Shown: positions 3,501 through 60,600 of the stretch, piece by piece
How the letters are laid out: every line of letters begins with the position of its first letter
How positions within the stretch are numbered: the stretch's first letter is position 1
Source of the DNA: Haplodiscus bocki
Lineage: Eukaryota
Length of the DNA: 64,000 bases
Direction: 5' to 3'
Assembly (NCBI GenBank): GCA_965655095.1
Contig: OZ296651.1
Coordinates: 110,732,001-110,796,000, forward strand
Made by a program: the position numbers and the translations under genes
The notes under the pieces: generated by a model
Databases searched by the model: none
The model's input: the letters and a program-made list of their open reading frames with translations, nothing else
Told to the model about the DNA's origin: nothing

Positions 3501-4132
3501 AATTTTTTGGGGGGCAAACCGGTCATTTTCGGCACTGTGAGACTACCCCGGGGGCACATTATGAGGTAAGAGGGGGTGTTTTTGGAGTCATCTGGAGCTA
3601 ATGGTTGAAATTGTACTTATGGTCTGAATCCGTAGGAGCCGTCCTTCAGGTCGAAAATGGGCGATTTGTAACGGTGATGCGTATCACCAACTCAAAATAT
3701 CACTTTCGGCACTGTGAGACTTCCCCGATGGGTGCCAAACCTGTATCAACGAACTTCACTCAATGAGTACTTACTACAAGTATAGGGGCTTGGAAGGCAG
3801 AATACCAATTCCTGAGAAGATATTAGAGATTTTTTTTAAAGTGACTAAGTCAGTGACTAAGTCAAAAATTTTGAGTCTCACAGCGCCGAAAATCTCAACA
3901 CAGATGTTCGATAGAAAAAAATTTCAGCAGAAAAAAGTTCTTAACTTCCGCATGCAAAAAATCAGGCAAATCGTATGGTTCAGTTTCGAGATCGTAATTG
4001 GGAGCCCCTAATTTTATAACTCCGTCCAGAAAGCCTGACTGATAGAGGCGGGAATGGGAACCCTACCGTTCCCGCCGAAAATGACGGGCCACCACTACCC
4101 CGCGCACCTAGCGGTCGAAGCTATTTCGAATG
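580..4132. mobile_element. Type A unit 1 (~3.55 kb), non-coding tandem unit, putative non-autonomous partner of the Helitron-like element
   Basis: Repeats head-to-tail, shares the common region with B units, has no conserved long ORF, and contains internal ~0.21 kb and ~0.88 kb duplications. Confidence 0.75.
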
Positions 4133-7100: not shown

Positions 7101-7743
7101 CACTTTTTGAACCACATCCAATTTTTTTCGGCACTGTGAGACTACCCCGGGGCCAACTTATGAGGTAATAGGGGGTGTTTTTGGAGTCAACAGGAGCTAG
7201 TGAACAAAATTGTACTCATGGTCTGAATCCGTAGGAGCCTTTCTTCAGGCTGAAAATGGGCGATTTGTAACGGTGATGCGTATCACCAACACAAAATATC
7301 ACTTTCGGCCCTGTGAGACTGCCCCGCGGGGTGCGAAACCTGCATCATCGAACTTCACTCAGTGAGTACTTACTACAAGTATATGGGCTTGGAAGCCGTA
7401 ATACCAATCCCTGAGCAGATATTAGAGATTTTGTTGCAAGTGACTAAGTCAGTGACTAAGTCATTAATATTGGGTCTCACAGTGCCGAAAATCTCAACAC
7501 AGAGGTCCGATAGAAAAAAATTTCAGCAGAAAAAAGTTCCTAACTTCCAAAAATATGGCCGCATGCAAAAAATCAGGCAAATCGTATTGTTCAGTTCCGA
7601 GTTCGTAATTGGGAGCTCCTAAATTGATAACTACGTCCCAGAAAGCTTTACTGATGAGGCGGGAATGGGAACCCTACCCTTCCCACCGAAAAAGACGGGC
7701 TACAATCACCCCGCGCACCTAGCGGTCGAAGCTACTACGAATG
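4133..7743. mobile_element. Type A unit 2 (~3.61 kb)
   Basis: Colinear with A1; second sub-repeat is the variant carrying gagcttggtgtgctttt and aaactctaaaactcta. Confidence 0.75.
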
Positions 7744-8727
7744 ACAAGGCCTGCATTTTTTCTAACTTTTAGTGTATGTCTGTTGTTCCCCGCTTCGTTT
7801 TATTTCCCTACCGATAATATTTTCTTTCACGACTATCATGAAAAACGCTCAACTCTTGTCTCTTAGAAGTGTATATTTGTTCCTTGACACTTAATTCAAA
7901 ATTCAGGAGCCTCCGAGCACAACTTTGGCTACTTATGGTTTTTCGAATGCTTAGATGTTTTTTCGAAGAAAAGCATTTTCATGGATCACTTTCTGGTTTT
8001 TTTTTGTACTTCCATACACGATTCATTTAAAATGAAGACTGCTTAAAATAGCTTAAGTTTAAGTGCACTATATCAAACATTGATTGATTGCCTATTATGA
8101 TTTTTGCAATACCTTTCGCTAAATGTATCCTAAAAAACTTTCAGCTTTCTTGGTATTTCAATATGTGAAACTGACTTTCAGGTTCAAAGTTTTGGTTGTA
8201 GATAGAATAAAATGTTTTAACTCAAAGAATTTAATTTACTTCAGAGAGCTCAGGAAAAATGCCAATCAAAACACAGCATTAATTCATGAGCAACAAGACA
8301 ACAACAACACAGTTAGCTGTACTTAGCTCAGAGAAGTTTTTAATACAAACATGGTTCTAAAACAAAAAGAACACTGTTGCAAGTATGTAAAACTCATTTC
8401 AAATGTATATAAGAAGCGAAAACTTTGTGGCTCATGTTTTTTGCATCTTTCAAGTTAACATTTTTCTGAAAATTTTTGGATTGAAACTTTTCACTAGCGT
8501 AGGTTTTTGTATTTCTGAATAACATTCCAGGGATATCAGTACATGTCTTCTAATAATAGTAAAAATAGGCAGGAGGACTAAGATACAAAAATTTGTCTTC
8601 TTGGGTCGAGCACGTTGCACTCACCTCAGACGTTTCATAAGACTAAACATGATAAACTAATAGGTTTCATTTATACGATGCTGTGTCATTCTGGCCCCGG
8701 CCCCTCTTCATATATTCCCAACCTGCT

Positions 8728-9711
8728 TCAAACATTGCCATCATGGCCATACATTAAAACATTTTGAGCAGCAGAAAACAGTGTGACGGGCTCTATTGAG
8801 GAAATGTGGTATGCAAACGTCCCACTCGCTACACCTTCCTCATCCATTGCCGGTTTGAACCAGCCCGTTATACGAAACCCCTGATTAGCCGCAACATTAT
8901 TGGCCAATTCTATCACTTCATCCTCCATGTCGAATGTATCCAAATTATCCGAAGACAACTGTTCGGTTCTTTTATTGGCATGAACCAAATTCTTTGTGAG
9001 GGCCATGGATGTAAACTCCACCGCCTTTTCACCAGTTACACGCTCACCCAATTCGTTGCAAACAATCTTGAAAGTCAGTGCCCAATGCTTTTTACTCTCC
9101 GCTAAAATGCAAGGACAGGGGTTATTTCCCTGGGCGTCGCATAATTTTCCATTGCACACATTGTCTTTAGGCATAGCTTGAAGTATGCGGAAATTTGATG
9201 GAATGAAATCAAAGAACACGTAATTAGGGATATTGATATCAGTGGGGGGAGGTTTGTGTACATTTCCCCTTCCAGTAGGAACAACAGGGTCACCAAACTG
9301 AATCAAAGGATTTTGTGTTGTTTTCAGATACCCAATTACTTTAGGGCTTAGTACCCAAACGGGGCAACCTGGCGCAAGATGTTGACTATAGCACAGTATT
9401 CTTCTTGACTCCATTGATGTTTGCGTGAAAGTTAGCAGGACATGATTTGTCCCTTCCACACCTAGTACGATAAACCTATCATTGTTAACTTCCTGGTATC
9501 TCGATTTGAAAGTGTTTTTTGCAGGTTTATAGTAATTGATTTTTTTCAAACCTGGTGTTGCATAAAGAAAAACACACTTCAGCTTATAACGTGAAGGTAA
9601 TTCATATTCATCACTTATGATTTGATTATACTGTTTTGTTTCGAATTTTTCGTTGACACTCATTTGAACCTCATTCAGGGGCTTTTCGAACTTGATGTAA
9701 CCTACAGGCAT
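8728..9711 (-). CDS. 327-aa element-encoded protein of unknown function with C-x4-C-x7-C-x-C motif (possible Zn-containing OB-fold/RPA-like)
   Basis: ORF is open in all four B copies; motif CNGKLCDAQGNNPCPC; many differences between copies are at third codon positions. The function is inferred only. Confidence 0.85.
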   Translation of the reverse strand: MPVGYIKFEKPLNEVQMSVNEKFETKQYNQIISDEYELPSRYKLKCVFLYATPGLKKINYYKPAKNTFKSRYQEVNNDRFIVLGVEGTNHVLLTFTQTSMESRRILCYSQHLAPGCPVWVLSPKVIGYLKTTQNPLIQFGDPVVPTGRGNVHKPPPTDINIPNYVFFDFIPSNFRILQAMPKDNVCNGKLCDAQGNNPCPCILAESKKHWALTFKIVCNELGERVTGEKAVEFTSMALTKNLVHANKRTEQLSSDNLDTFDMEDEVIELANNVAANQGFRITGWFKPAMDEEGVASGTFAYHISSIEPVTLFSAAQNVLMYGHDGNV

Positions 9712-10013
9712 TTTGCACTGAAAAAAAAACGGAGTTTTTGTTTAAAACTGGTAATGCTACCAAAATTGATAGCTGGATGCATTTTTAAAAGGCATAGCCA
9801 AAACAATTCTCATCAATACTTATTGCGATTTTGAAATTGCAGCTGCGAGAAAGAAAACAGTAGACCCTGTAGAAAAATACTCGACCCGTTCGAAAATACT
9901 GAGACCTAATACGCAAAATGGTTACTTTTCAGGTGTAGACAAAACTTTTGAAGATAAAACGAAAAATGACGTATCCATTGTAAGATAAATGCAGGTAAGG
10001 GAAAAATTCAGGA

Positions 10014-10058
10014 GAACGCTCGCATCGGGCACGTAAAACGTCCCCGCTGACTCGCTAG
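10014..10058. terminator. Conserved GC hairpin + CTAG between the GIY-YIG stop and the orphan ORF (Helitron-end-like signal)
   Basis: CGGGCACGT-AAA-ACGTCCCCG-ctgactcg-CTAG is nearly invariant at 10014, 32875, 45210 and 57562, while its flanks drift. Confidence 0.55.
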
Positions 10059-10096
10059 AAAAAATAACAAAGTAAAATTTAATTGTATAGCAAGGA

Positions 10097-10604
10097 TCAT
10101 GAAATAACAGTTCCGCAACAACAAAAGACTAAGTTACCAAATTGATTGGAATTGCATAAAGTTCGAAATTCATCAACAAGTGCGTCAATTCTTAAATCAA
10201 AAAACAACAGTTGGTGCAAAGAGGTCTCCATAAGCAACCTGTCACTGTCATTTTGAAAATTATAACAGAATGCGGCCAATGACCATGGTCTGCGATGAAG
10301 TGGTAATGTAAAATTGCCTCCGTAACCACTGTTATGTTCAAGGAGACGTGTGAGAACACTTCTTTTCGTTTGACCAACATAGGTAGTTTTCAAAGTTTTG
10401 TCTTTCAAGCTCACAAGAACATATACGAAACCAAGAATAACGTCTGGAATTTCAACCCGAATTGGACGGAATTGAAATTCTGGTAAATTCAGCACTGTAG
10501 GAGCTCTGCTCATTGTTTGAAGATTCATCAATCTTTTAGTTACTTCAATTTCATGAGGGGTTGTTTTCGACAAAATAGCTCTGATCGCCCGACAAGTGTC
10601 ATCA
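10097..10604 (-). CDS. GIY-YIG endonuclease exon (last exon of the RepHel gene)
   Basis: GFVYVLVSLKDKTLKTTYVGQTKRSVLTRLLEHNSGYGGNFT..RPW..E resembles the SLX1/UvrC-type GIY-YIG pattern; the exon is open in all four copies. Confidence 0.85.
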
Positions 10605-10729
10605 CTGCAATTAGAAAAAGGCTTTTCCTTAGTTCCTCAATTGGTGCAAGAATTAAAATCTGGATGAAGAAATGAATTTGACCTATTTATGTCTCATCTA
10701 AAATTGGAGCCCCTAAGGAAAAGCCTTAC
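10605..10729 (-). other. Predicted 125-nt phase-2 spliceosomal intron joining the helicase to GIY-YIG
   Basis: AT|GTAAGG donor and TTTTTCTAATTGCAG| acceptor. Splicing gives FVGDI-DDTCRAIRAILSKTTPH in frame. Same length and sites at 33466-33590, 45801-45925 and 58153-58277. Confidence 0.8.
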
Positions 10730-13700
10730 ATATCGCCAACAAAGATAATATTTTTCAATTCTCTGACACGACTGACAATAACATAAAGCTGGGAAGCCAT
10801 CCAAAGTGCATATTTCCGTTCCTGAATGGAAACTTGAGTTGCTAACTTTGGAAAGGTATCTCCCATTAACTTATGACATGTGAGAGCTACGTAATTTGTT
10901 AGAGGAAACTGGATTCTCCGAACAGATGATGCTTTCATTTTGTAAATAAAACCATTACTTTTGTATACTCTTGTTGTCGGCCAATTCAAAAACAACTGTT
11001 GGCTAAACAAATTTGGGGTAGCTATGGAATCAATTTCAGGTGACACGTAAACCAGTATAGATGTGTCACTGGGCGACGGTAATTCTGCCACAATACATAT
11101 TTGTCCCTGTGTCAGAGGTCCAGTGTTTATTGTCAACCTGACAACAGAATGCTTTTTCAAAACTAATTTCGCAGGTTCCCTACATTCACGGTCTAAATAA
11201 TTGACTGCCTGATGCGTTGCCGGAACCCAGTAGTTGCTTCTATTTGTGCACATTTCATCTTGAGATAAAAACTCAACAAAAGGTTCGTTGGAGGCTGTCA
11301 CCGAATTTTGATAGGCTGCGATGGCTTCTCTTTCTGCTTCTTTTTTACCGAAAACTTTCATCACTGATGTATCGGACAATGAATCCCACGATGGGATGAA
11401 GGAACAGTTTGAACGTATTATTTCGCTGATGGTATCTATATCCCGCGTGGGTATTGGCTTCTGCGACATTAAATCCAGAAGCTGCTGCCCCACTGGGTCT
11501 AACATTCTAACTAAACTGGTCAAAAAATGAGTTTGGAAGCAAAATAAAATCGTGGGTGACAGAAAAACATCTGAACCGTCAATAGCTGGTAGTTGATTGG
11601 TGTCTCCGTTACCTACGACCATTACACCGCCGAACATGCACGTATTTTCTCGAACATTCTGCAGAATCAGGTTAATTGTGGATAACAGTTCACCATTGAG
11701 AAGTCCAATTTCTTCAATTACCAGAATGTCCAAAGATAGGAGTAAAGCTTTCTGCTCCGGATGGTTATGTAACTTCGTCATTGCTCTTTCCATTGCTGTG
11801 TTGGGATCTAATTTTTTGTTGACCCCGATGCAGAACAGGCGGTGTATATGTAAACAATTGAAATGAGACGCTCGACGAGCGGCTAAACTGGTAACATAAC
11901 ATTGAAGTCCATTCATCATGGCATAGAGCAAACAGATGCTTGTTAGGTGACTTTTTCCAGATACTGGTCTACCAAGGACAAGTTGGTTCCTAATTGACTC
12001 ATGTGATTGCAGAACTTGATCAACAGCTGCAAAAAGTCTTGTTAGAACAACCTGCTGTTGACGGTGTGATGCTACTGATTGATGACTTGGTTTAATAACT
12101 GCTGGGACCCAATGTGCTGTTGGGTTTTGAGTTATTGTATTCGGAACGTTGGTGACATTTTGTGGTCGTAAACGTTGAAAAAGACGTTCTTGCGTTTCCT
12201 GCAGAAAAACCATTAAAGTTCTTTCTGTCTGCTCTGTCAAGTGACTCATTAGAACTGGCGGAAAGCAGTTGCTAGCAACGCTGTCGTTCAAAATTAGATC
12301 TTGAATTGCTTCGGCTGCAAAAACCAAACGCGAAGAGAAGGAAACGTTGCCTCCTGGAATGTAAATTAACTGTTCTAAAATGTAACGTTTAAGGAGATGA
12401 TGGCTATCAGTTATATCATATTGTGCTTTTCGTGGAATAATTCCAGCAGTCACGAAACAATTCCTCAGGCTACTAGAAGAAAACAAATCGAGTTCCGTCT
12501 CGAAAGAACCCATTGTGTATAGCAGATGGAGTAGGAACTTGAAATGGTTTTTCGGATAAACTTTAGAAAAGACGATTTCTGCTGGACCCGCTGACAGCAT
12601 CGTACTCTCTGCCACGTATATTTCTCGGAAATTTGTTGTGTTCAAATTTCTCAACACGTTTTCAAACTCAGCGACACGTGGGTCATTAAAACCTGTGAAC
12701 TGCGTGAACCATATTTGTAATTCACGCAAGGCTGAAGATCTCAATTTAATTTTCGAATTAGTTCCATCTAACCATGGTCTTGGAACGAGTGATAAAGTTG
12801 GAATGACTTTGTTGGAGTGAATGCGTGTCTTGTCTCTCACGAAAAAAGCGAAGTAATCTTTCAACTTACGAACAAATAGTAATTCGGGTGGACGGATTGA
12901 GAAAAGAGTGACTTTATCGATTGAGAAATTGGAGTGGGAAGCGTCTTCTATCTGCGTTTTTTGACGATTTGTGAAACAATTATGCTGCGGGAACAACAAA
13001 AATTCACGTTCACTCAGGGAATTACCGTCACTGCCACTGGGTAGAACATACGAACGAGGTTTCCTGTAGAATTTTCCTCCACGGTTTTCCAAAGATATTG
13101 AAGGAACATGAACGAATTCAAAGTTTGTAATAACCACTGGCAGCTTCAGTAACCACCACAGGTATTCAGTTTGAGATACATTTAAAGCTGAGATTGCTGG
13201 CGTCTGTCTTTCCTGTTGTAGAGACTTATTGTTCTGGATTTGAGCTCCCGTGACTTTCAAGTTTTGCAGCTCCATTTGCTGTATCCGAAAAGAATTGTCT
13301 GCTGTTCCTGCTTTCATTTGAACACTACCATGTTCTTCTTTTCCGGCAGCATACTTGTTTAAATATTGGAAGCAAAATTTCTGGTGATAATTTGAACATT
13401 GCTGCTGGATTTGGTCAGAGCAAATAACTTGGGAGAAGTAGGCATAATTTGAGAACCTTTGTCAGCAGCATATGAGACTTTTTCGCACTTCAATTGTTCT
13501 CCTACTTCGTAATTCCAGTCGTCAATAAAACGAATTAGGTTCAGCTGTGCCAAAATTTGGGCGGCCTCAGCTGAATAGGTTTGCGGTATTTCTTTCAGCC
13601 ACAAAGAATGGGAAGGGGCATATGGTTGAAAGCGACAAATTTTTTTTCCAGTTGAATCTGTTTTCTTGAAACAGCGGCCCGACGTATTTTCGCAATTGTG

Positions 13701-16700
13701 ACATTGAATTTTAAAGCAAAGGTCGATGATGTCACTCAACTCCTCAACGGTGTCGATCAAGTGGATCTCGGAATGGAAAAGTTTTTCAAACGCGTCAATG
13801 AAATGTTTTCGTGTAGATTCCATTAGTGATTCAATTTCATGTCTTTCATTTTTCAACCAGAGTAAAAAGTGGTAATGAGGAAAATTAGCCGCCAACGACT
13901 GAAACTCGGCGCGTCCCCAAAGTTTTACAATATTACCCAAAAGATTCTCGTCTGAATTAAGCAGATAATCAACCAGCTCATTAACGGTATTGTTCCACAT
14001 TTGCAACAACATTGGCATGTACAACTGGAACGCAGCTTTGTAAAGTTCCGTTCTTTTGTCTGGGAACATTTCCTCGATGGCGTTGAACATCGGTGCAATT
14101 CCAAAATGTTTCTTTTGGTTGACCGTAATTGTGAGAAAAATCGCAGGTGTTTCGGTTTTGATTGCTTTAGCAAGTTCGACGACGTTTTTCTCAGAATCCA
14201 GCAAGGAGAAACTGACTGACTGAGGAACAGAGTGCAATTGTTTGCCTTTAATTTCAATGTTATGCACACCTCGCTTGAAAAACTCTGAAGTGAAACTACT
14301 TTGTAAACTAACATTGAGCAGCACGTCAGTGAGATAAAACAAATACTTGCTGTTACAAGAGACCGGTAGCTCAATATTATTCACACGGGCGAGAACGTGT
14401 TGGTGGAAGCTGGCGAATCCGTAATGATTATTACTCTGCTCGTCGTCTTACAAAAAGTACGGCAAAGCTCCAGTAAAAGCGCCGTCTGATTCCTGATTGA
14501 AAAACACACTGGGACAAAATAGCGATTCAGTTTGAATTAAAGAAAGAACGTCACCCGGATTGGCGGCCGCAAAGTTCTGAAAAAACCGTAAGTACTTTTT
14601 TGACATGACTATAGGGCTTTCGAATCGCCTACACACATTGAGAGCTCCATTAAGGAGCAGGTGAAATGGGGCCATATTGTTTTCAGTTTCGAGCTCTGGC
14701 AAAATGTTTGTGGCTTCCGTTTCCCCGCACTGAGTATTCACGGCACCTGTCTCTTCGATGCCGACAAAATTGACAAGAGACAGAGAATCATTCGAACCGC
14801 TTACATTTGAAGGCGAGAAAGCATTGTCTATCGATAAGGTCGGTAAATTATTTGATTCCATTTCTGAGTCAACCGAAATATTTGAAGGTGAGGGCGAACT
14901 GGCTGCGACAACAAAACAATCGAACCGTTCAGAATACTCTCGGAAATGATTAGAACAAATTGATACTCCACAAAATTCAACTGGACAACGCCATGCAGAT
15001 GTCCGTGAACAGTCAGCAACTGAACACCTGAAAACTGACGATTTTATGTCGACAGACAAATACATTTTGTGTGTGGAACAAGTGCAAACATCTTGACCTC
15101 CAAAAAAAACCAAACTTCCGGTACGAGTAACAGAATTATAATTGTTTGACACATATAACAGAATGTTCCATGATCTGTACAGACCTTCGAGCATTGTTGT
15201 TGAGTTGCATTTGGTAGAAGTAAAATCAGGCAAAGAAACTGACCACCAATCTGGTAAGTGAATACCGTAACGAAAAAAAAAAGAAATTTTCTCCCTCACT
15301 AAAAAGCGAAACTAAATGAAATGTGGTTGAATGCAGTGTGAGTGTAAAGGGAGGAGGATTCAACCTCGACGGGAGTTGGCTGCAAACGATTACAAAACAT
15401 TGAAAATCAAAATCTTCCGCTATATCAAACAAATCTATCATTTGGTGTCGAATAACTAACTGCCGAAAGGGAACGTAGAAAGAAGCACAAAGAGGCATTG
15501 TCTCAAAAGCTTGATGAATCGCAGAAGTGGCAGTTGACACGGAAAAATACAATTGGAAGTGTTGTTGCAACAAGGATATAGCTCTATTAACCGTTTCTCC
15601 TTTTTTCTTTTTGTTATTACCCAATTGATGTAATTTTAAAATGTATTGAGACCAGTTGCAAACATTTAGAAGGATGTGACCAAATAATTCCAGATTTTGG
15701 TGCCAAAAAACAAGCAGACTTGCACCTTGCGAAACAGTATACAGCAGTTTCGGACAGCCCTGGGGCTCAGCGCCATGTCTTCGGTCGTGATGAACGATGA
15801 GGAGAGAGGGTGGTACACAAACTTTGCCGCCAGTATGGCAATCCAAATAAAGCTTAACGCTACTCAACGAAAACATTGTCAGGTAAGTTCCTGAAGACAG
15901 ATGCTGCTCAAAAGCAACTTCGTCAACGAACAGCGGGAACTTTGCAATGAAAGATCGCATGTTCTCGTCTATTTCATTCTGATTCGTGAGACGAGTCAGG
16001 AAATTCCTTATGTCTCTGCGGTGGTCATAAACTAGCGATTCCGATTGAGGAAGCAGCTGATCACTTTTTACATTATAATTTCGCTGGTTAGTTACAATCA
16101 AGGTGCTGATTCCGTCATACCCGCCTTTACTCGTTGCCATAGAATACGTGTGCGAGAAACTTCCCAATTTGAAAGGTGTAGCATTTCGCACTTTTGTCGC
16201 CATTGGAGCAAAACGATCACTTTGCGGATGCAGTAGATTCCCGAGAGGAGAAGTAGGGACGTGAACGATTTTTTTGTGAGATTTTTGTGAGCTTGGCATG
16301 TTTTGAGAAAAAGCCCATGGTCGTTGACTTCTAAACAAGGCGAACAGACAAAGGTATCAAGGTGTTGGCAAGCTCGTAAAAAGTCTTTGCGCATTCCTCG
16401 TAAACAATGTGCGTCAGCTTGGAAGGATTTGAAAGAGGGAAAAAAGTAGTTTAACAAATGGACGAAGGAAATGTTATCGCAGGCAAAAAGTGGAACAGAG
16501 CACCCGGCAGGACACTTGACGAAAGGAAAACAGTGTTTATTGAACTCGTGTTTCAAATTAGCCGCTTTGAACTCCTTCTTGCTTTCCAAAAACTTTCGCT
16601 GTTTGACTGTATAGTCCTGGAAAAGACTGCTGCTGGTATCTTCCTCTAGTTGGTGGTATGCTTCGCTCCAGCATTTGTACCAGGACTGTCTCATTTCAAC

Positions 16701-18100
16701 GGGAAGTAACTTATAAAAGTAGTAACCATTGCAATTATTTTTAGAACTTAATATTAACGTGCAGAAAACCGCGGGCCACGCAAATTTCCACTCCAAGCTA
16801 TCACAAAACTTCTCACAAAGTTGACAAGTGCAGATGAGACTTCCCAATGGCGACTTCACTTTTGCCCCAAATTTTTTTTTCCTGTGTTTATTAGAGCATG
16901 AAATCGTTTCAAAATGTAGGTTATAAAACGATGTACTCTCTCGCAAACAAATTGCGCATGTCGTAGGACTAGGAGATGGGACAACACTGCAGGTTGTTGA
17001 AGCAAGAAGTTCCCGTAAATCCACTTCACAAATCACTTTAAAAGTAGCTGTGCTGGTCCTTGTAACCAGCGAGGCAAATGTATTACTCTCGATTGAGCTT
17101 TGCAAATCACTTGACCCCCGTGTGCATGAAGAAGCGTCAAAAGTGCCAACGTCTAATTCTTCAGAATGAGTACTTTCCAAAAACGAAACAGCTTCAGTTT
17201 CACCATTATCAACAACAAACACAGTTTGCTCTGCTTCATCGACAGCACTCGCAAAGCGGCCAGTTTTTGGGTCTCTTTCTCTAACAGACATGCCAGACAA
17301 GTATGTTAATTACATGGCCACAAAACTAGAACCACCTAAGCTGTGCTATAGTGGGTTGATTCTTCAAAAAAGACATGCTGACGTTCAAATCGATTAACGA
17401 AATACAATTCAGAAATTAAGAAGAAAAATCACCTAAGCGTAGCTATGATGGGTTGATTCTCTCTTTAGCAGTAACAATTTCAAATACTGTGACCGATATA
17501 ATGGTTTTCAGTTGAGCACCAAATTCACAGGGCTGTCAAAATTCCATTTATTGAACAACAGAATACTAGGAAAACTGCCACTCGAGACGCTGAAGCAACC
17601 ATCCATGAATCGTCATTACGTCAATAATATCAGCAACCCATAATTCAACTGAAAACATCATATTCGAGCAGGCGAAACCACAGTTTCCGTTTTACACGTA
17701 CCAGAAAAAAAACTCCCAGAAAGAATGATCAAGAAGGCACCTTTAAAAAAACCGCCTGATAAAAAAGATTCTTGAGTATAACGTTTATGCAAAACCTATG
17801 AAAGCAAAAAGTTCCAATTAAGAAAGGCAAGTTCCTTCAACACTTATGGAAGTTCAATAAATTCCAAGTACAATTTCAAAGTGACTAAAACAATCAACAA
17901 ACCTATACTGATCATTGAAAACAAATCAATGTTCAGTAAAAAAAATACTGCATCACTTAGGTTTCATTCGGAGATTAAAGAAAACCAGAAAAGTATTGGC
18001 AGCTAAAAACAAAGACAGATTGTAAAAACAAAATCAATGAATCAAAAATCAAGTGAAAAGCTTCATTGCACAGAGGAAATGAATTCCTAAACTGAAAACA

Positions 18101-18822
18101 CTAGAAGCGGTTGACAATTTTTCGTCTGATCAAACTTTGTAAATTGAAATTTCCACGTGTGTCTAGATGCACTTTATCAAATTTGAAGATGTTCTTATTC
18201 GCCAATTTTGACGCAACTCCATGGTATATGTATCCACCATTGGCAGCTCCTCGTTGAGAGAAGAGATTCAGTTCTTTTATCAAGTTGGACACCTCGTTGT
18301 CCAGCCTCAAACATACAGCCAGAACGTGAATCCTGTTAACTTTTGACTGCAGCATTACGACAAGTTCCATAATTTGTTGATGAACCTGAACAATCAAACG
18401 AGAAATTGTTGTATCTTTTCTGAATTTATCATGCCAAAACTCATTTACTGCATCTTTTCCGATACTACTGAAAACAAAGCCTACCTCTCATGGGTTGAGA
18501 CACGAGGTCCCACCTAAGGCAGCATGAAAAAAAATAAGTCCACGTTTCGACAAACTTTTGCTTGAAGTCAAGATTACACAATTTAAGTAAATATATTAAC
18601 CATAGCTGGTGGAACAGCTGGAGCTCCATTCCATTGTTTCAAACTGTTGCCGCCCAAGAACAGAATAATTTGCTCATATTCTCCATACCTCATACTATTA
18701 ATGCATCCAACAACTCGCCGATCATTCGGCCTGGCTCCGGAATACGCGAAGACTTTTGTATTAGGTAGAGTTAAGTTCAAACCCATGGAATCGCTGATCA
18801 AGGCAAACTTCGATATAGACAT
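18101..18822 (-). CDS. SGNH/GDSL-type hydrolase, ~168 aa, two exons (18822-18601, 18385-18101)
   Basis: Blocks ISDSMG (I), YSGA (II), LFLGGN (III) and FDKVHL (V). Phase-0 intron ATG|GTTAAT...TTGTTCAG|GTT gives PPAM-VHQQIMEL. Confidence 0.75.
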
Positions 18823-20079
18823 TTTCTGACTCTGGAAAAAGGTTTGTTGACCTTTTTGTAAAATGCAGTTAACCGAATTGTATGGTTAACAGTTCAAAAA
18901 TTTTACTAGGCAATAATGGACACTGTGAACCCTAAAACATCAACAACGAAATGTGTGTAACGTACAACTAAAAAAACGGAACAGGCTAAATTACTTATAT
19001 ATTACTTTTGAAAGTTCAGTTTTAGATAACTTGCCTGTTTGGAATTGTACGGAACCTAGAAGCAGATCACCACTTCATACAAAAGACGTGAACGTTGTAC
19101 TCCATATGAAACGAATAAACGACAACATATTAAACATGAACCATTGGTTTAAACCCATAAAATCTTCGGCAATTTCCCTGACATAAGAGCAAAAATGTGG
19201 TCGTTAGTCACCGGGGCATTGAAGCAGTTGGATTGCGAATGCTTAAATTGAAAGGATGTTACTTGATTTAACGTAAACATTATTTAGAAAGTTTTTCCAT
19301 AAAAAATATCACTTTTAAAATTTTCGGCATTGTGAGACACATACATTCAAAATGGGCTCAGGAAAACGTCGGAAGTTTCATTTTTCATCAAAATATTTGA
19401 AAACTGCACCCGTTCAGGTAACATTTGGAAAGAAAAAAATTATTGGATGACATTGGTCATTTTCGGCACTGTGAGACTACCCCGGGGGAATCTCATGGGG
19501 TATTAGGGGGTGTTTTTGGAGTCATCTGGAGCTACTGGATAAAGTTGTATTCATGGTCTGAATCCGTAGGAGCCTTCCTTCAGGCATAAAACGGGCGATT
19601 TGTACCGGTGATGCGTATCACCAACACAAAATATCACTTTCGGCACTGTGAGACTCCCCCGCGGGGTGCGAAACCTGTATCACCGAACTTCACTCAATGA
19701 GTACTTACTGCAAGTATATAGGCTTGGAAGGCGTAATACCAATCCGTGAGGAGATATTAGAGATTTTGTTCAAAGTGACTAAGTCAGTGACTAAGTCAAA
19801 AAAATTGAGTCTCACAGCGCCGAAAATCTCAAGACAGATGTCCGATAGAAAAAAATTTCAGCAGAAAAAAGTTCTTAGCTTCCGAAAATATGGCCGCATG
19901 CAAAAAATCAGGCGAAATCGTATGGTTCAGTTTCGAGATCGTTATTGGGAGCCCCTAAATTGATAACTACGTCCCAGAAAGCTTTACTGATGAGGCGGGA
20001 ATGGGAACCCTACCCTTCCCGCCGAAAAGGACGGGCCACAACTACCCCGCGCACCTAGCGGTCGAAGCTATTTCGAATG

Positions 20080-23000: not shown

Positions 23001-23468
23001 GAAAAAACTTTCGGCCAAACCGATCATTTTCGGCACTGTGAGACTACCCCGGGGGGTGCGAAACCTGCATCACCGAACTTCACTCAATGAGTACTTACTA
23101 CAAGTATATAGGCTTGGAAGCCGTAATACCAATCCCTGAGGAGATATTACAGATTTTGTTCAAAGTGACTAGGTCAGTGACTAAGTCAATAATATTGCGT
23201 CTCACAGTGCCGAAAATCTCAACACAAAGGCACGATAGAAAAAAAATTTAGCAGAAAAAAGTTCCTAACTTCTGAAAATATGGCCGCATGCAAAAAATCA
23301 GGCAAATCGTATGGTTCAGTTTCGAGATCGTAATTGGGAGCTAAAGATTTTATAATAAGTCCCAGAAAGCTATACTGATGGAGGCGGGAATGGGAACCCT
23401 ACCCTTCCCGCCGAAAAGGACGGGACACCAAAGCCCCGCGCACCTAGCGGTCGAAGCTATTTCGAACG
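20080..23468. mobile_element. Type A unit 3 (~3.39 kb; ~180-bp deletion in the common region)
   Basis: Colinear with A1; two adjacent 14-mer-led segments are fused at ~23030-23060. Confidence 0.75.
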
Positions 23469-32572: not shown

Positions 32573-32957
32573 TGTGCACTGAAAAAAAGGCGGAGTTTTT
32601 GTTTAAAACTGGTAATACTACAAAAATTGATAGCTGGATGCATTTTTAAAAGGCATAGCCAAAACAATTGTCATTAATACTTATTGCGACTTTGAAATTG
32701 CAGCTCCGCAAAAGAAAACACTAGACTATGTCGAAAAATGCTTGAGCCGTTCGAAAATACTAAGAACTAATACGCAAAATGGTTACTTTTCAGGTGTAAA
32801 CAGAACTTTGGAACAAAAAACGAAAAATGACATATCCATTACAAGATAAATGCAGATAAGGGAAAAAATCAGGAGAACGCTCGCATCGGGCACGTAAAAC
32901 GTCCCCGCTGACTCGCTAGAAAAAGTAACAAAGTAAAATTTAATTGTAAAGCAATGA

Positions 32958-35900
32958 TCATGAAATAACAGTTCCGCAACAACAAAAGACTAAATTACCA
33001 AATTGATTGGAAATGCATAAAGTTCGAAATTCATCAACAAGGGTGTCAATTCTTAAATCAAAAAACAACAGTCGGTGCAAAGAGGTCTCCATAAGCAACC
33101 TATCACTGTCATTTTGAAAATTATAACAGAATGCGGCCAGTGACCATGGTCTGCGATGAAGTGGTAAAGTAAAATTGCCTCCGTAACCACTGTTATGTTC
33201 ATGGAGACGTGTGAGAACACTTCTTTTCGTTTGACCAGCATAGGTAGTTTTCAAGGTTTTGTCTTTCAAGCTCACCAGAACATATACGAAACCGAGAATC
33301 ACTTCAGGAATTTCAACACGAATTAGGCGGAAATATATTTCTGGTAAATTCAGAGCTGTAGGAGCTGTGCTCATTGTTTGAAGATTCATCAATCTTTTAG
33401 TTACTTCAATTTCATGAGGGGTTGTTTTTAACAAAATAGCTCTGATCGCTCGACAGGTGTCATCACTGCAGTTAGAAAAAGGCTTTTCCTTAGTTCTTCA
33501 ATTGTTGCAAGAATTAATTTCTGGATGAACAAATGAATTTCACCTAATTACACCTCATATACAATTGGATCCCCTAAGGAAAAGCCTTACATTTCGCCAA
33601 CAAAGATAATGTTTTTCAATTCTCTGACACGACTGACAATAACATAAAGCTGCGAAGCCATCCAAAGTGCAAACTTCCGTTCCTGAATGGAAACTTGAGT
33701 TGCTAACTTTGGAAAAGTATCTCCCATTAACTTATGGCATGTGAGAGCAACGTAATTTGTTAAAGGAAATTGAATTCTCCGAACAGATGATGCTTTCATT
33801 TTGTAAATAAAACCAGTACTTTTGTAAACTCTTGTCGTCGGCCAATTTAAAAACAACTGTTGGCTAAACAAATTTGGGGTAGCTATGGAATCAATTTCAG
33901 GTGACACGTAAACCAGTATATAGATGTGTCACTGGGCGACGGTAATTCTGCCACAATACATAATTGTCCCTGTGTCAGAGTTTCAGTGTTTATTGTCAAC
34001 CTGACAACAGAATGCTTTTTCAAAACTAATTTCGCGGGTTCCCTACATTCACGGTCTAAATAATATACAGCTTGAGGCGTTGCGGGAACCCGGTAGTTGC
34101 TTGTACTTGTGAACATTCCATCTTGAGATAAAAACTCAACAAAAGGGTCGTTGGAGGCTGTCACCGAACTTTGATAGGCTGCGATTGCTTCTCTTTCTGC
34201 TTCTTTTTTGTCGAAAACTTTCATCACGGATGTATCGGCCAATGAATCCCATGATGGGATGAAAGAACAGATTGTACGTATTATTTCTCTGATGGTATCT
34301 ATATCCCGCGTGGGTATTGGCTTTTGCGACATTAAATCCGAAAGCTGCTGCCCCACTGGGTCTATCATTCTAACTAAACTGGTCAAAAAATGAGTTTGAA
34401 AGCAAAATAAAATCTTGGGTGACAGAAAAACATCTGAACCTTCAATGGCTGGTAGTTGATTGGTGTCTCCGTTACCTACGACCATTACACCGCCGAACAT
34501 GCACGTATTTTCTCGAACATTCTGAAGAATGAGATTAATAGTGGATAACAGTTCACCATTGAGAAGTCCAATTTCTTCAATTACCAGAACGTCCAAAGAT
34601 AGGAGCAAAGCTTTCTGCTCCGGATGGTAATGTAGCTTCCTCATTGCTCTTTCCGTTGCTGTGTTGGGATCTAACTTCTTGTTGACCCCGATGCAGAACA
34701 ACCGGTGTATATGTAAACAATTGAAATGAGACGCTCGACGAGCGGCTAAACTGGTAACATAACATTGAAGTCCATTCATCATGGCATAGAGCAAACAGAT
34801 GCTTGTTAGGTGACTTTTTCCAGATCCTGGTCTACCAAGGACAAGTTGGTTCCTAATTGACTCATGTGATTGCAGAACTTGATCAACAGCTGCAAAAGTC
34901 TTGTTAGAACAACCTGTTGTTGACGGTGTGATGCTAGTGATTGATGATTTGGTTTAATAATTGCTGGGTGCCAATGTGTTGTTGGGTTTTGAGTTATTGT
35001 ATTCGGAACGTTGGTGACATTTTGTGGTTGTAAACGTTGAAAAAGACGTTCTTGCGTCTCCTGCAGAAAAGCCATTAAAATTCTTTCTGTCTGCTCTGTC
35101 AAATGGCTCATTAGAACTGGCGGAAAACAGTTGCTGGCAACGCTGTCGCTCAAAACAAGATCTTGAAATGCTTCGGCTGCAAAAACCAAACGCGAAGAGA
35201 AGGAAACGTTGCCACCTGGAATGTAAATTAACTGTTCTAAAATATAACGTTTAAGAAGATGATGGCTATCAGTTATATCATATTGTGCTTTTTGTGGAAG
35301 AATTCCAGCAGTCACGAAACAACTCCTCAGGCTACTAGAAGAATACAAATCGAGTTCCGTCTCGAAAGAACCCATAGTGTATAGTAGATGAAGTAGGAAC
35401 TTAAAATGGTTTTTCGGATAAACTTTGGAAAAGACGATTTCTGCTGGACCTGTTGACAGCATCGTACTGTCTGCCACGTATATTTCTCGGAAGTTTGTTT
35501 TGTTCAAATTTCTCAACACTTTATCGAACTCAGCGACACGCGGATCGTTAAAATCTGTGAACTGTGTGAACCATATTTGTATTTCATGCAAGGCTGAAGA
35601 TCTCAATTTAATTTTCGAATTAGTTCCATCTAACCATGGTCTTGGAACGAGTGATAAAGTTGGAATGACTTTGTTGGAGTGAATGCGTTTCTTGTCTCTC
35701 ACGAAAAAAGCGAAGTAATCTTTGAGCTTACGAACAAATAGTAATTCGGGTGGACGGATTGAGAAAATAGTGACTTTATCGGTGGAGAAATTGGACTGCG
35801 AAGCATCTAGTATCTGCGTTTTTTGACGATTTGTGAAGCAATTATGCTGCGGGAACAACAAAAATTCACGTTCACTCAGGGAATTTCCGTCACTGCCACT

Positions 35901-45292: not shown

Positions 45293-48200
45293 TCAAGAAA
45301 TAACAGTTCCGCAACAACAAAAGACTAAATTACCAAATTGATTGGAATTGCATAATATTCGAAATTCATCAACAACTGCATCTATTCTTAAATCAAACAA
45401 CAACAGCTGGTGCAAAGAGGTCTCCATAAGCAACTTGTCACTGTCATTTTGGAAATTATAACAGAATGCAGCCATTGACCATGTTCTGCGATGAAGGGTT
45501 AGAGTAAAATTTCCTCCGTAACCACTGTTATGTTCATGGAGACGTGTGAGAACACTTCTTTTCGTTTGACCAACATAGGTAGTTTTCAAGGTATTGTCTT
45601 TCAAGCTCACAAGAACATATACGAAACCGAGAATTACTTCTGGAATTTCAATACGGATTGGGAGGAAATATAATTCTGGTAAATTCACAGCTGTAGGAGC
45701 TCTGCTCATCGTTTGAAGATTCATCAATCTTTTAGTTACTTCAATTTCATGAGGGGTTGTTTTGGACAAAATAGCTCTGGTCGCTCGACAAGTGTCATCA
45801 CTGCAATTAGAAAAAGGCTTTTCCTTAGTTCTTCCATTGCTGCAAAAATTAAAGTCTGGATGAACAAATGAATTTGACCTATTTATATCTCATCTACACT
45901 TGGAGCCCCTAAAGAAAAACCTTACATTTCGCCAACAAAGATTATGTTTTTCAATTCTCTGACACGACTGACAATAACATAAAGCTGGGAAGCCATCCAA
46001 AGTGCATACTTCCGTTCCTGAATGGAAACTTGAGTAGCTAACTTTGGAAAGTATCTCCCATTAATTTATGGCATGTGAGAGCTACGTAATTTGTTAGAGG
46101 AAATTGGATTCTCCGAACTGATGATGCTTTCATTTTATAAATAAAACAATTACTTTTGTATACTCTTGTTGCCGGCCAATTCAAAAACAACTGTTGGCTA
46201 AACAAATTTGGGGTAGCAACGGAATCAATTTCAGGTGACACGTAAACCAGTATAGATGTGTCACTGGGCGACGGTAATTCTGCCACAATACATATTTGTC
46301 CCTGTGTCAGAGGTCCAGTGTTTATTGTCAACCTGACAACAGAATGTTTTTTCAAAACTAATTTCGCAGGTTCCCTACATTCACGGTCTAAATAATTGAC
46401 TGCTTGATGCGTTGCCGGAACCCAGTAGTTGCTTGTATTTGTGCACATTTCATCTTGAGATAAAAACTCAACAAAAGGTTCGTTGGAGGCTGTCACCGAA
46501 TTTTGATAGGCTGCGATGGCTTCTCTTTCTGCTTCTTTTTTACCGAAAACTTTCATCACTGATGTATCGGACAATGAATCCCATGATGGGATGAAGGAAC
46601 AGTTCGTACGTATTATTTCGCTGATGGTATCTATATCCCGCGAGGGTATTGGCTTTTGCGACATAAATCCAGAAGCTGCTGCCCCACTGGGTCTAACATT
46701 CTAACTAAACTGGTCAAAAAATGAGTTTGGAAGCAAAATAAAATCATGGGTGACAGAAAAACATCTGAACCGTCAATAGCTGGTAGTTGATTGGTGTCTC
46801 CGTTACCTACGACCAATACACCGCCGAACATGCATGTATTTTCCCGAACATTCTGCAAAATGAGGTTAATTGTGGATAACAGTTCACCATTGAGAAGTCC
46901 AATTTCTTCAATTACCAGAATGTCCAAAGATAGGAGTAAAGCTTTCTGCTCCGGATGGTTATGTAACTTCGTCATTGCTCTTTCCATGGCTGTGTTGGGA
47001 TCTAACTTTTTGTTGACCCCAATGCAGAACAGGCGGTGTATATGTAAACAATTGAAATGAGACGCTCGACGAGCAGCTAAACTGGTAACATAACATTGAA
47101 GTCCATTCATCATGGCATAGAGCAAACAGATGCTTGTTAGGTGACTTTTTCCAGATCCTGGTCTACCAAGGACAAGTTGGTTTCTAATTGACTCATGTGA
47201 TTGCAGAACTTGATCAACAGCTGCAAAAAGTCTTGTTAGAACAACCTGCTGTTGACGGTGTGATGCTAGTGATTGATGACTTGGTTTAATAACTGCTGGG
47301 ACCCAATGTGCTGTTGGGTTTTGACTTATTGTATTCGGAAGGTTGGTGACATTTTGTGGTCGTAAACGTTGAAAAAGACGTTCTTGAGTTTCCCGCAGAA
47401 AAGCCATTAAAGTTCTTTCTGTCTGCTCTGTCAAGTGGCTCATAAGAACTGGCGGAAAGCAGTTGCTAGCAATGCTGTCGTTCAAAACTAGATCTTGAAT
47501 TGCTTCGGCTGCAAAAACCAAACGCGAAGAGAAGAAAACGTTGCCTCCTGGAATGTAAATTAACTGTTCTAAAATGTAACGTTTAAGAAGATGATGGCTA
47601 TCAGTTATATCATATTGTGCTTTTCGTGGAATAATTCCAGCAGTCACGAAAGAATTCCTCAGGCTACTAGAAGAAAACAAATCGAGTTCCGTCTCGAAAG
47701 AACCCATTGTGTATAGCAGATGAAGTAAGAACTTGAAATGGTTTTTCGGATAAACTTTAGAAAAGACGATTTCTGCTGGACCCGCTGACAGCATCGTACT
47801 CTCTGCCACGTATATTTCTCGGAAATTTGTTCTGTTCAAATTTCTCAACACGTTTTCAAACTCAGCGACACGTGGGTCATTAAAACGTGTAAACTGCGTG
47901 AACCATATTTGTAATTCACGCAAGGCTGAAGATCTCACTTTAATTTCCGAATTAGTTCCATCTAACCATGGTCTTGGAACGAGTGATAAAGTTGGAATGA
48001 CTTTGTTGGGGTGAATACGTGTCTTGTCTCTCACGAAAAAAGCGAAGTAATCTTTCAACTTACGAACAAATAGTAATTCGGGTGGACGGATTGAGAAAAG
48101 AGTGACTTTATCGGTTGAAAAATTGGAGTGGGAAGCGTCTTCTATCTGGGTTTTTTGACGGTTTGTGAAACAATTATGCTGCGGTAACAACAAAAATTCA

Positions 48201-57644: not shown

Positions 57645-60600
57645 TCATGAAATAACAGTTCCGCAACAGCAAAAGACTAAATTACCAAAATGATTGGAAT
57701 TGCATAAAGTTCGAAATTCATCAACAAGTGCGTCAATTCTTAAATCAAACAACAAAAGTTGGTGCAAAGAGGTCTCCATAAGCAACCTATCACTGTCTTT
57801 TTGGAAATTATAACAGAATGCGGCCAATGACCATGGTCTGCGATGAAGTGGTAAAGTAAAATTGCCTCCATAACCACTGTTATGTTCATGGAGACGTGTG
57901 AGAACACTTCTTCTGGTTTGACCAACATAGGTAGTTTTCAAGGTTTTGTCTTTCAAGCTCACAAGAACATATACGAAACCAAGAATTACGTCTGGAATTT
58001 CAACACGAATTGGGCGGAATTGAAATTCTGGTAAATTCAGAGCTGTAGGAGCTATGCTCATTGTTTGAAGATTCATCAATCTTTTGGTTACTTCAATTTC
58101 ATGAGGGGTTGTTTTCGACAAAATAGCTCTGATCGCTCGACAAGTGTCATCACTGCAATTAGAAAAAGGCTTTTCCTTAGTTCTTCAATTGTTGCAAGAA
58201 TGAAAGTCTGGATGAACAAATGAATTTGACCTATTTACATCTCATCTACAACTGGAGCCCCTAAGGAAAAGCCTTACATTTCGCCAACAGAGATTATGTT
58301 TTTCAATTCTCTGACACGACTGACAATAACATAAAGCTGGGAAGCCATCCAAAGTGCATATTTCCGTTCCTGAATGGAAACTTGAGTTGCTAACTTTGGA
58401 AAACTATCTCCCATTAACTTATGGCATGTGAGAGCTACGTAATTTGTTAGAGGAAATTGGATTCTCCGAACAGATGATGCTTTCATTTTGTAAATAAAAC
58501 CATTACTTTTGTATACTCTTGTTGTCGGCCAATTCAAAAACAACTGCCGGCTAAACAAATTTGGGGTAGCTATGGAATCAATTTCAGGTGACACGTAAAC
58601 CAGAATAGATGTGTCACTGGGCGACGGTAATTGTGCCACAATACATATTTGTCCCTGTGTCAGAGGTCCAGTGTTTATTGTCAATCTGACAACAGAATGC
58701 TTTTTCAAAACTAATTTCGCAGGTTCCCTACATTCACGGTCTAAATAATTGACTGCTTGATGCGTTGCCGGAACCCAGTAGTTGCTTGTATTTGTGCACA
58801 TTTCATCTTGAGATAAAAACTCAACAAAAGGTTCGTTGGAGGCTGTCACCGAATTTTGATAGGCTGCAATGGCTTCTCTTTCTGCTTCTTTTTTACCGAA
58901 AACTTTCATCACGGATGTATCGGACAATGAATCCCATGATGGGATGAAAGAACAGTTTGTACGTATTATTTCGCAGATGGTGTCTATATCCCGCGTGGGT
59001 ATTGGCTTTTGCGACATTAAATCCAGAAGCTGCTGCCCCACTGAGTCTAACATTCTAACTAAACTGGTCAAAAAATGAGTTTGGAAGCAAAATAAAATCA
59101 TGGGTGACAGAAAAACATCTGAACCGTCAATAGCTGGTAGTTGATTGGTGTCTCCGTTACCTACGACCAATACACCGCCGAACATGCATGTATTTTCCCG
59201 AACATTCTGCAAAATGAGGTTAATTGTGGATAACAGTTCACCATTGAGAAGTCCAATTTCTTCAATTACCAGAATGTCCAAAGATAGGAGTAAAGCTTTC
59301 TGCTCCGGATGGTTATGTAACTTCGTCATTGCTCTTTCCATTGCTGTGTTGGGATCTAACTTTTTGTTGACCCCGATGCAGAACAGGCGGTGTATATGTA
59401 AACAATTGAAATGAGACGCTCGACGAGCGGCTAAACTGGTAACATAACATTGAAGTCCATTCGTCATGGCATAGAGCAAACAGATGCTTGTTAGGTGGCT
59501 TTTTCCAGATCCTGGTCTACCAAGGACAAGTTGGTTTCTAATTGACTCATGTGATTGCAGAACTTGATCAACAGCTGCAAAAAGTTTTGTTAGAACAACC
59601 TGCTGTTGACGGTGTGATGCTTGTGATTGATGACTTGGTTTAATAACTGCTGGGACCCAATGTGCTGTTGGGTTTTGACTTTTTGTATTCGGAAGGTTGG
59701 GGACATTTTGTGGTCGTAAACGTTGAAAAAGACGTTCTTGCGTTTCCTGCAGAAAAGCCATTAAAGTTCTTTCTGTCTGCTCTGTCAAGTGGCTCATTAG
59801 TACTGGCGGGAAACAGTTGCTAGCAATGCTGTCGTTCAAAACTAGATCTTGAATTGCTTCGGCTGCAAAAACCAAACGCGAAGAGAAGGAAACGTTGCCT
59901 CCTGGAATGTAAATTAACTGTTCTAAAATGTAACGTTTAAGGAGATGATGGCTATCAGTTATATCATATTGTGCTTTTTGTGGAATAATTCCAGCAGTCA
60001 CGAAACAATTCCTCAGGCTACTAGAACAAAACAAATCGAGTTCCGTCTCGAAAGAACCCATTGTGTATAGCAGATGAAGCAGGAACTTGAAATGGTTTTT
60101 CGGATAAACTTTGGAAAAGACAATTTCTGCCGGACCCGCTGACAACATCGTACTGTCTGCCACGTATATTTCTCGGAAGTTTGTTCTGTTCAAATTTCTC
60201 AACACGTTTGCAAACTCAGTGACACGTGGATCATTAAAACCTGTGTACTGTGTGAACCATACTTGTAATTCACGCAAGGCTGAAGATCTCAATTTAATTT
60301 TCGAATTAGTTCCATCTAACCATGGTCTTGGAACGAGTGATAAAGTTGGAATAATTTTGTTGGAGTGAATGCGTGTTTTGTCTCTCACGAAAAAAGCGAA
60401 GTAATCTTTCAACTTACGAACAAATAGTAATTCGGGTGGACGGATTGAGAAAAGAGTGACTTTATCGATTGAGAAATTGGACTGGGAAGCGTCTTCTATC
60501 TGCGTTTTTTGACGATTTGTGAAGCAGTTATGCTGCGGGAACAACAAAAACTCACGTTCACTCAGGGAATTTCCGTCACTGCCACAGGGCAGAACATACG

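Follow-up and report, generated by a model that had tools for sequence, protein, structure and literature searches.

Two open reading frames (ORFs) on the minus strand of a stretch of the Haplodiscus bocki genome raise the question addressed here: is a GIY-YIG nuclease the product of a gene of its own, or is it the C-terminus of the transposase encoded upstream of it? The stretch comprises 64,000 nucleotides (nt) of contig OZ296651.1 (GCA_965655095.1; positions 110,732,001-110,796,000) and is referred to as a whole as the window, whose own coordinates are used throughout. One ORF ends with the helicase of a Helitron-like RepHel transposase, and the other, listed from a TTG codon, encodes the nuclease. 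An earlier inspection of the letters (hereafter, the sequence-only reading) had proposed that a hidden intron fuses the GIY-YIG domain to the RepHel C-terminus. This proposal is supported by intronless homologues, by the exact colinearity of the junction, by an intron shared in position and phase with two other families, and by equal purifying selection on both exons. Accordingly, a 125-nt segment is very probably an ordinary phase-2 GT-AG spliceosomal intron, the only one of the gene, that joins RepHel to an SLX1-type GIY-YIG domain within a 12.3-kb Helitron-like transposon.

A probable phase-2 intron between helicase and nuclease

The helicase ORF (10726..13317, minus strand, 863 codons) closes with ...GTT GGC GAT ATG TAA, and this TAA sits within a GTAAGG donor whose first base is the G of the final ATG. 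The donor GT occupies positions 10729-10728 and exon 1 ends at 10730 in phase 2, whereas the acceptor AG (10606-10605) lies inside CCTTTTTCTAATTGCAG and is followed by the first base of exon 2 (10604), which completes the split codon (AT+T). The frame of exon 2 is that of the TTG-listed ORF (10097..10573, minus strand) and opens, past a TAA at 10612-10610, just two codons ahead of the acceptor. All four copies of the element in the window (c1-c4; c1 is the copy described above) retain the donor, the acceptor and an intron length of 125 nt, with no insertions or deletions (indels) in the intron or exon 2, and a fifth copy from another assembly (L006) shows identical splice signals and the same length. 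The claim that the helicase stop lies in a GTAAGG donor, with an acceptor 125 nt on that restores the frame in four copies, is thus confirmed exactly.

The quality of the signals was assessed against the alternatives available nearby. The donor is close to the GTRAGT consensus (GTAAGG...TGCAG in the four window copies and L006), and the acceptor region, CCTTTTTCTAAT/CTGCAG, contains CTAAT or CTAAC at a distance of 9 nt from the AG, as well as ACTAAG at 25 nt, elements that were recognized by eye and match the consensus only. Among 15 frame-restoring GT..AG pairs within 350 nt, only 10729/10605 has consensus-like signals and removes no residue conserved in homologues. Variable sites in the intron number 3 of 35 in the 3' 35 nt versus 18 of 78 in the middle part, which is a trend only (Fisher p = 0.07).

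Upstream, exon 1 is open for ~2,190 codons in the majority frame of the four copies, and its N-terminus, MSVRERDPKTGRF, aligns with the start of an intact ORF of 2,189 amino acids (aa) in a related element, L004. The predicted spliced product measures 2,356 aa (2,187 + 1 + 168), in agreement with the ~2,350 aa of the sequence-only reading. Further introns in exon 1 were considered and rejected: the other frame changes are private 1-2 nt indels, and exon 1 of L004 is uninterrupted over 2,189 codons.

Homologues with helicase and nuclease in one chain

Each exon served as a query of its own. A word-based search with the helicase ORF retrieved 7 relatives, and a search of 1.8 billion representative proteins with exon 2 retrieved 307, many of them proteins of 1,800-2,990 aa matched at their C-terminus, often from query residues 1-3 and often beginning upstream of the listed TTG start. 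Pfam assigns PIF1 and GIY-YIG domains to the long relatives and, additionally, Helitron_like_N to one of them (P0066). Contiguous intronless homologues, which the sequence-only reading had suggested looking for, were found in P0028 and P0066, single unbroken ORFs of 7,902 and 8,334 nt, respectively, that encode helicase and GIY-YIG together and with which exon 1 is colinear. In the P0028 alignment, helicase residue 862 (the D of FVGD) corresponds to residue 2460 and exon-2 residue 2 to residue 2463; in the P0066 alignment, residue 2598 ends at 10732 and residue 2600 starts at 10603, with the same result in all four copies. Since exactly one homologue residue falls between the exon ends, the gap between the exons corresponds to the split codon. 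Likewise, exactly one residue lies between the exons in 31 of the 44 homologues whose alignments reach both exon ends.

The sequence-only reading had set against itself the case of homologues that always encode GIY-YIG as a separate gene. Instead, helicase homology lies upstream in the same polypeptide in 87 of the 150 best GIY-YIG relatives (offline BLASTP), 15 of which show Rep homology too. Across 32 fused homologues, the pairwise identities of the helicase C-terminal part and of GIY-YIG are correlated (Spearman 0.62, a kind of value that kinship among sequences inflates; 0 of 1000 Mantel permutations as high), a co-divergence that is more in line with one ancient fusion passed on as a whole than with capture on several occasions. 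A widespread and mostly unnamed lineage has this helicase-GIY-YIG fusion as its ancestral architecture, and the majority of its members are intronless at this position.

These comparisons bear directly on the idea of a separate GIY-YIG gene, whose translation would begin at Met26 or Met31 of exon 2 or by reinitiation, and for which the GT..AG pair would be a coincidence. A mechanical list of ORFs does show it as a distinct ORF, and gene callers start at Met26 on related contigs (P0002 and P0004). However, these separate calls were made by intron-blind programs. Conservation extends through the 25 residues that precede Met26, as far as the acceptor, and this segment can be aligned with the contiguous homologues. 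In addition, the ORF start lacks an ATG, the frame is open for just two codons ahead of the acceptor, and the junction is exactly colinear with the intronless proteins. A separate gene is therefore very unlikely.

Introns at the same site in other families

Two other families carry an intron at this site. In L004 and L005 (ENA assembly), an intact RepHel ORF of 2,189 codons ends with ...GGT TCA AA^GTAAGT and is followed by a 67-nt intron that closes with TTCACAG^G (carets mark the exon boundaries) and leads into a GIY-YIG exon of 175 codons. This intron interrupts the same codon as that of the window, in phase 2 and with an in-frame TAA, whereas its length and sequence differ. A decayed third family (L002) shows GT^GTAAAT...CCGAAG^C, ~167 nt long, again in the same codon and in phase 2. 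The intronless P0066 stems from the same sample as L004. Together with the contiguous homologues, these introns establish the gene structure.

A further explanation would be that all four copies received the 125 nt from a progenitor already disabled by their insertion, the inserted segment being, for instance, a small palindromic mobile element; the segment does have 15-bp terminal inverted repeats resembling those of miniature transposons, and all copies in the window are pseudogenes. However, the two other families have interruptions of 67 and ~167 nt, unrelated in sequence, at this very position and in this phase, in one case after the intact 2,189-codon ORF, the inverted repeats begin at +3, inside the canonical GT...AG, and purifying selection on exon 2 equals in strength that on exon 1 (see below). 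This origin is extremely improbable, and a miniature inverted-repeat insertion in particular was rejected, given that within the window the 15-mer is confined to the intron arms and that the introns of the other families differ at the same site.

As a separate observation on these relatives, the contig that carries L005 (ENA ERZ25074608, ctg177350_370x_c, 49.5 kb) is labeled circular by the assembler and has ~3.5x the coverage of the other contigs of the sample. Collapse of a tandem array could account for this, as could an extrachromosomal circle.

Decay and selection in the window copies

The window contains no runs of N, and its four copies are 92-94% identical to one another. Every copy bears a single nonsense substitution of its own in exon 1 (Table 1) and 2-6 private frameshifts, the copies having been read across private deletions with N/X placeholders. 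The private indels span 1-2 nt and fall mostly within A/T runs, and no lesion affects the intron or exon 2. Because of these nonsense and frameshift lesions, no copy in the window can encode an intact protein. Comparisons between copies give a ratio of nonsynonymous to synonymous substitution rates (dN/dS) of 0.24-0.30 in exon 1 and 0.12-0.29 in exon 2, and the variable sites of exon 2 are distributed over the three codon positions as 10:13:38. Both exons have thus been under purifying selection and, since their dN/dS values are similar, the nuclease exon has been constrained as strongly as the remaining transposase. The copies diverged for the most part in lineages that were still active and were disabled later.

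Two alternative accounts of the lesions were rejected. A programmed -1 frameshift at ~13368 was suggested by a heptamer of c1 (A_AAT_TTT) just before the catalytic tyrosines; c2-c4 have one additional G at ~13366 and read through in frame (...FASKYLNKY), and the single-base deletion of c1 at ~13366, one codon ahead of the first catalytic tyrosine, creates the frameshift-like heptamer by chance. Likewise, a variant genetic code or stop readthrough can be set aside, since each stop is private and the other three copies all retain a sense codon at its position.

Domains of the predicted transposase

Splicing would yield a protein composed of a long N-terminal region, an HUH/two-tyrosine Rep, a PIF1-like helicase, a two-helix linker and GIY-YIG. 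The domain order Rep-helicase-GIY-YIG supports the earlier proposal that one predicted protein would carry two DNA-cutting modules, a two-tyrosine HUH and a GIY-YIG. Helitron_like_N scores 27.8 bits in c1 (cut-off 28.9), 35.3 in L004 and 32.7 in P0066, and PIF1 scores 25.3 (cut-off 25.9), 36.8 and 45.6 bits, respectively. A sequence search of the PDB with the helicase returned Pif1 structures as its sole matches, and the same kind of search with the Rep region returned no transposase even at E<=10.

The identity of the C-terminal domain is supported by several methods. Pfam GIY-YIG (PF01541) is detected in exon 2 with 23.7 bits against a cut-off of 22.6, and a 34-member family alignment shows the pattern GFVY...YIG.T...RL..HNSG.G...RPW...E. 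The motifs GFVY and TYVG and the residues Y61, Y75, R86, H90/N91 and E126 are retained in all four window copies. A family profile matches SLX1/HIGLE domains in the PDB (7wme, 5.5e-13; 4xlg, 1.3e-12) and, more weakly, UPF0213 proteins. In line with these results, the AlphaFold2 (AF2) model of exon 2 has a mean predicted local distance difference test (pLDDT) score of 87.4 and a beta-beta-alpha-beta-alpha core, and its best Foldseek matches are 7wme, 6seh and 7cq3 (E 8e-5 to 2e-4) and 4xlg, that is, HIGLE and Slx1-Slx4 structures, whereas UvrC is matched only at E ~1. Neither Pfam nor the AF2 model reveals a RING or zinc finger in the ~35 residues that follow the core; because the RING finger is missing, the domain is to be regarded as an SLX1-type nuclease core and not as an SLX1 orthologue. 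SLX1 requires SLX4 for its activity.

Several points weigh against the spliced-fusion reading and should be set beside this evidence. Splicing at 10730/10604 is a prediction from sequence, and the internal Met codons of exon 2 (residues 26 and 31) make a separate small product conceivable. The PIF1 and Helitron_like_N scores of c1 lie slightly below the curated cut-offs, those of intact relatives lying above them. All four copies and L006 carry disabling mutations, and the locus as it stands cannot make the protein. Finally, the biochemical role assigned to GIY-YIG is deduced from homology to SLX1, an SLX4-dependent enzyme, and would have to be exerted by a domain devoid of the RING finger.

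Within the spliced-fusion reading, a plausible division of labor can be drawn from known Helitrons. Helitron-like elements are thought to move by means of a single-strand HUH nickase and a helicase. Correspondingly, Rep would nick the ends of the element and attach covalently to them, the helicase would peel the strand off, and GIY-YIG might make an extra cut beyond the reach of the single-strand transferase, either in a flap or branched structure of the donor or target DNA or by nicking the second strand. An additional cut of this kind is what the Helentron AP-endonuclease is usually proposed to make. The SLX1-type affinity of the domain fits the guess of the sequence-only reading that it could act on branched intermediates.

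The intron stem and the possibility of a retention switch

The two ends of the intron are joined by a perfect 15-bp stem (Table 1), which is kept in five copies (c1-c4 and L006); in c3, the 5' arm shows two C>U changes that leave G.U pairs. No compensatory changes are found among the five copies, and the stem is not present in the introns of the L004 and L002 families.

An extension of the spliced-fusion reading holds that splicing is regulated: mRNAs that retain the intron would give a RepHel devoid of the nuclease, and transposition would be tuned or restricted by the proportion of the two isoforms. Intron retention has a precedent in the control of the Drosophila P element transposase. In favor of such a switch, retention would stop translation at the donor TAA in all copies and in the two other intron-bearing families, and the stem covers donor positions +3 to +6 together with a candidate branch point in five copies. 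However, the in-frame TAA follows automatically from any phase-2 GTAAG donor, recurs in L004 and L002, and therefore carries no information about a switch; thus, of the earlier claim, it stands that retention would end the protein one residue after exon 1, but the TAA itself is no evidence for regulation. Additionally, a stem that lacks compensatory changes and is missing from the L004 and L002 introns may equally aid splicing by bringing the intron ends together. Since most relatives are intronless, it cannot be essential to the lineage. Regulated retention is, overall, unlikely.

The element, its array and its second gene

Ten units, all in the same orientation, make up the whole window as a single head-to-tail array; the motif CCGCTAGGTGCGCGGGG joins them, and the sequence at the junctions between elements includes CCGCTAGGTGCGCGG. 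The array comprises three complete 12.3-kb autonomous units and a truncated one, as well as five complete units of ~3.4-3.6 kb and a partial one (1-552). The short units share the first ~600 bp of the autonomous element and contain internal repeats of ~880 bp; they look like non-autonomous derivatives. The solo copy L006, which is 95.9% identical to c2, has CTAGGTG at both ends (475-481 and 12805-12811), whereas tandem junctions carry it once (e.g., 42905-42911). This heptamer could be a site of Rep nicking or termination that is present at each end; alternatively, it could be a target duplication of 7 bp, an unusual feature in a Helitron. No inverted repeat of at least 8 nt was found between the element ends, and Rfam gave no match over the whole window. 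Because c2 (30577-42917) is nearer to the solo L006 (95.9%) than to its array neighbors (~92%), and because dN/dS is ~0.25, the array appears to have grown as diverged active elements inserted repeatedly next to one another, and not by local duplication of a dead copy.

Downstream of exon 2 lies a second conserved gene, ORF2, which is 53% identical to an ORF downstream of the L004 transposase. It has nine database relatives, none with a Pfam domain, and one of them (P0176) resides on a contig of the same size as that bearing the intronless P0066. ORF2 itself has no Pfam or PDB sequence match. Its AF2 model is poor (pLDDT 52.6), and the Foldseek matches of this model are non-significant, mostly OB-fold or zinc-containing single-stranded DNA binders (RPA, CST, Cdc13 and the MCM N-terminal domain), which hints at an RPA-like protein. 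The placement of a polyadenylation-like hexamer after the exon-2 stop, invariant in the four copies (Table 1), suggests that the transposase mRNA may end before ORF2.

Table 1. Features of the Helitron-like array in the window (window coordinates).
Feature	Position	Strand	Remarks
Exon 1, copy c1	10730..17291	(-)	ATG 17291-17289; 2,187 codons + 2 nt, private lesions set aside
Intron, phase-2 GT-AG, 125 nt	10605..10729	(-)	Donor GTAAGG, acceptor CTAATTGCAG
Exon 2	10097..10604	(-)	1 split-codon base + 168 codons + TGA stop 10099-10097; two-helix linker, then GIY-YIG
Intron, copy c2	33466..33590	(-)	Equivalent of c1 intron
Intron, copy c3	45801..45925	(-)	Equivalent of c1 intron
Intron, copy c4	58153..58277	(-)	Equivalent of c1 intron
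Intron stem, 5' arm (intron positions 3-17)	10713..10727	(-)	Overlaps 5' splice-site positions +3 to +6
Intron stem, 3' arm (intron positions 98-112)	10618..10632	(-)	Overlaps candidate branch point CTAAG
Rep HUH motif FPHYHFLLW	13857..13883	(-)	Read from sequence
Rep two-tyrosine motif YLNKY	13351..13365	(-)	Out of frame in c1 through private 1-nt deletion at ~13366
Walker A GRPVSGKS, PIF1-like SF1B helicase	11950..11973	(-)	Sequence motif and Pfam PIF1
SLX1-type GIY-YIG core, exon-2 residues 58-133	10205..10432	(-)	Pfam, profile, AF2/Foldseek
GIY-YIG motif GFVY	10421-10432	(-)	
GIY-YIG motif TYVG	10373-10384	(-)	
GIY-YIG motif R-x3-HN	10331-10351	(-)	
GIY-YIG motif RPW	10283-10291	(-)	
Predicted catalytic Glu within METS	10220-10231	(-)	
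ATTAAA polyadenylation-like hexamer	10078..10083	(-)	~15 nt past exon-2 stop; invariant in 4 copies; read from sequence
c1 nonsense TAC>TAA (Tyr in other three)	14448..14450	(-)	Private
c2 nonsense GAG>TAG	~37557		Private
c3 nonsense CGA>TGA	~49821		Private
c4 nonsense TGG>TAG	~60703		Private
Copy c1, full extent, ~12.34 kb	7716..20058	(-)	Bounded by junction motif CCGCTAGGTGCGCGGGG; ends from solo copy L006:475-12811
Junction motifs 1-5 of 9	543-561, 4096-4114, 7707-7725, 20043-20061, 23432-23450	(-)	
Junction motifs 6-9 of 9	26998-27016, 30568-30586, 42902-42920, 55237-55255	(-)	
ORF2, second conserved gene, 327 aa	8728..9711	(-)	Cys-rich motif CNGKLCDAQGNNPCPC

Comparison with known systems

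Helitron-like elements differ in their termini: HLE1 elements have 5'-TC...CTRR-3' ends with a 3' hairpin, HLE2 elements have short terminal inverted repeats and a TT target, and neither produces a target-site duplication. Canonical Helitrons (HLE1, e.g., Helraiser) share with the window element a two-tyrosine HUH Rep and a PIF1-like helicase, recognized by the Helitron_like_N and PIF1 Pfam families, and the 3' end of the window element contains CTAG, which fits CTRR. They differ in that the window protein is ~800-1,000 aa longer and bears the extra nuclease, in that its 5' end is not TC, and in the 7-nt CTAGGTG present here at both ends of the solo copy. Thus, the termini of the window element match neither the HLE1 nor the HLE2 pattern clearly.

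Helentrons (HLE2) are similar to the window element in having a second, unrelated endonuclease fused after the helicase, as well as head-to-tail arrays, non-autonomous derivatives and internal tandem repeats (PMC11417382, PMC6431247). The two differ in the nuclease, which is an AP-endonuclease (Exo_endo_phos) in Helentrons and an SLX1-type GIY-YIG here; correspondingly, Pfam detects Exo_endo_phos neither among the ORFs of the window nor in eight scanned relatives, five of which are full-length. The accessory domains listed in reviews are RPA, OTU and AP-endonuclease (PMC6431247). One sentence of the HELIANO paper mentions a GIY-YIG domain captured by HelenSM92, an HLE2 family of the moss Sphagnum magellanicum, and it is the only link between Helitron-like elements and GIY-YIG that was found in the searchable literature (PMC11417382). 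Like the window element, HelenSM92 has GIY-YIG beside RepHel; whereas its domain is described as captured, that of the window lineage is, in at least 87 representative clusters, a C-terminal part of the transposase that is ancestral and co-diverging, the two being compared by description only.

Outside Helitron-like elements, the SLX1, HIGLE and UPF0213 (YhbQ) proteins have the nuclease core and its motifs (GxxY, YxG, R-x3-HN-G, RPW and the catalytic Glu) in common with exon 2. The window domain differs from them in that it lacks a RING or zinc finger and any sign of an SLX4-like partner, and in that it is fused to a transposase behind a lineage-specific two-helix linker. Penelope-like retroelements also have a C-terminal GIY-YIG on a mobile-element enzyme, where it nicks DNA for integration (PMC6431247), but its partner is a reverse transcriptase and not RepHel.

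On its predicted product, the window element is a Helitron-like transposase with an SLX1-type GIY-YIG C-terminus, set apart from Helentrons by its nuclease. A broader claim would combine three statements: that RepHel-GIY-YIG elements form a widespread, deep and unrecognised Helitron-like lineage that is neither canonical Helitron nor AP-endonuclease Helentron, that the SLX1-type nuclease is integral to it, and that a stem-clamped intron here sets the ratio of nuclease-bearing to nuclease-less protein; as a whole, this claim is quite unlikely. Because ORF-based, intron-blind annotation splits the transposase, such elements are easily misannotated as a helicase and an unrelated small nuclease gene.

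The SLX1-type GIY-YIG that follows the helicase, co-inherited across many divergent families, represents a second, independent solution beside the AP-endonuclease of Helentrons. It bears on why some Helitron-like elements, the Helentrons, carry a second endonuclease, and the small foldable domain (168 aa, with a confident model) is usable for studying the additional cut. Taken together, the two solutions suggest that rolling-circle transposition generally needs a cut that is structure-specific or falls on the second strand.

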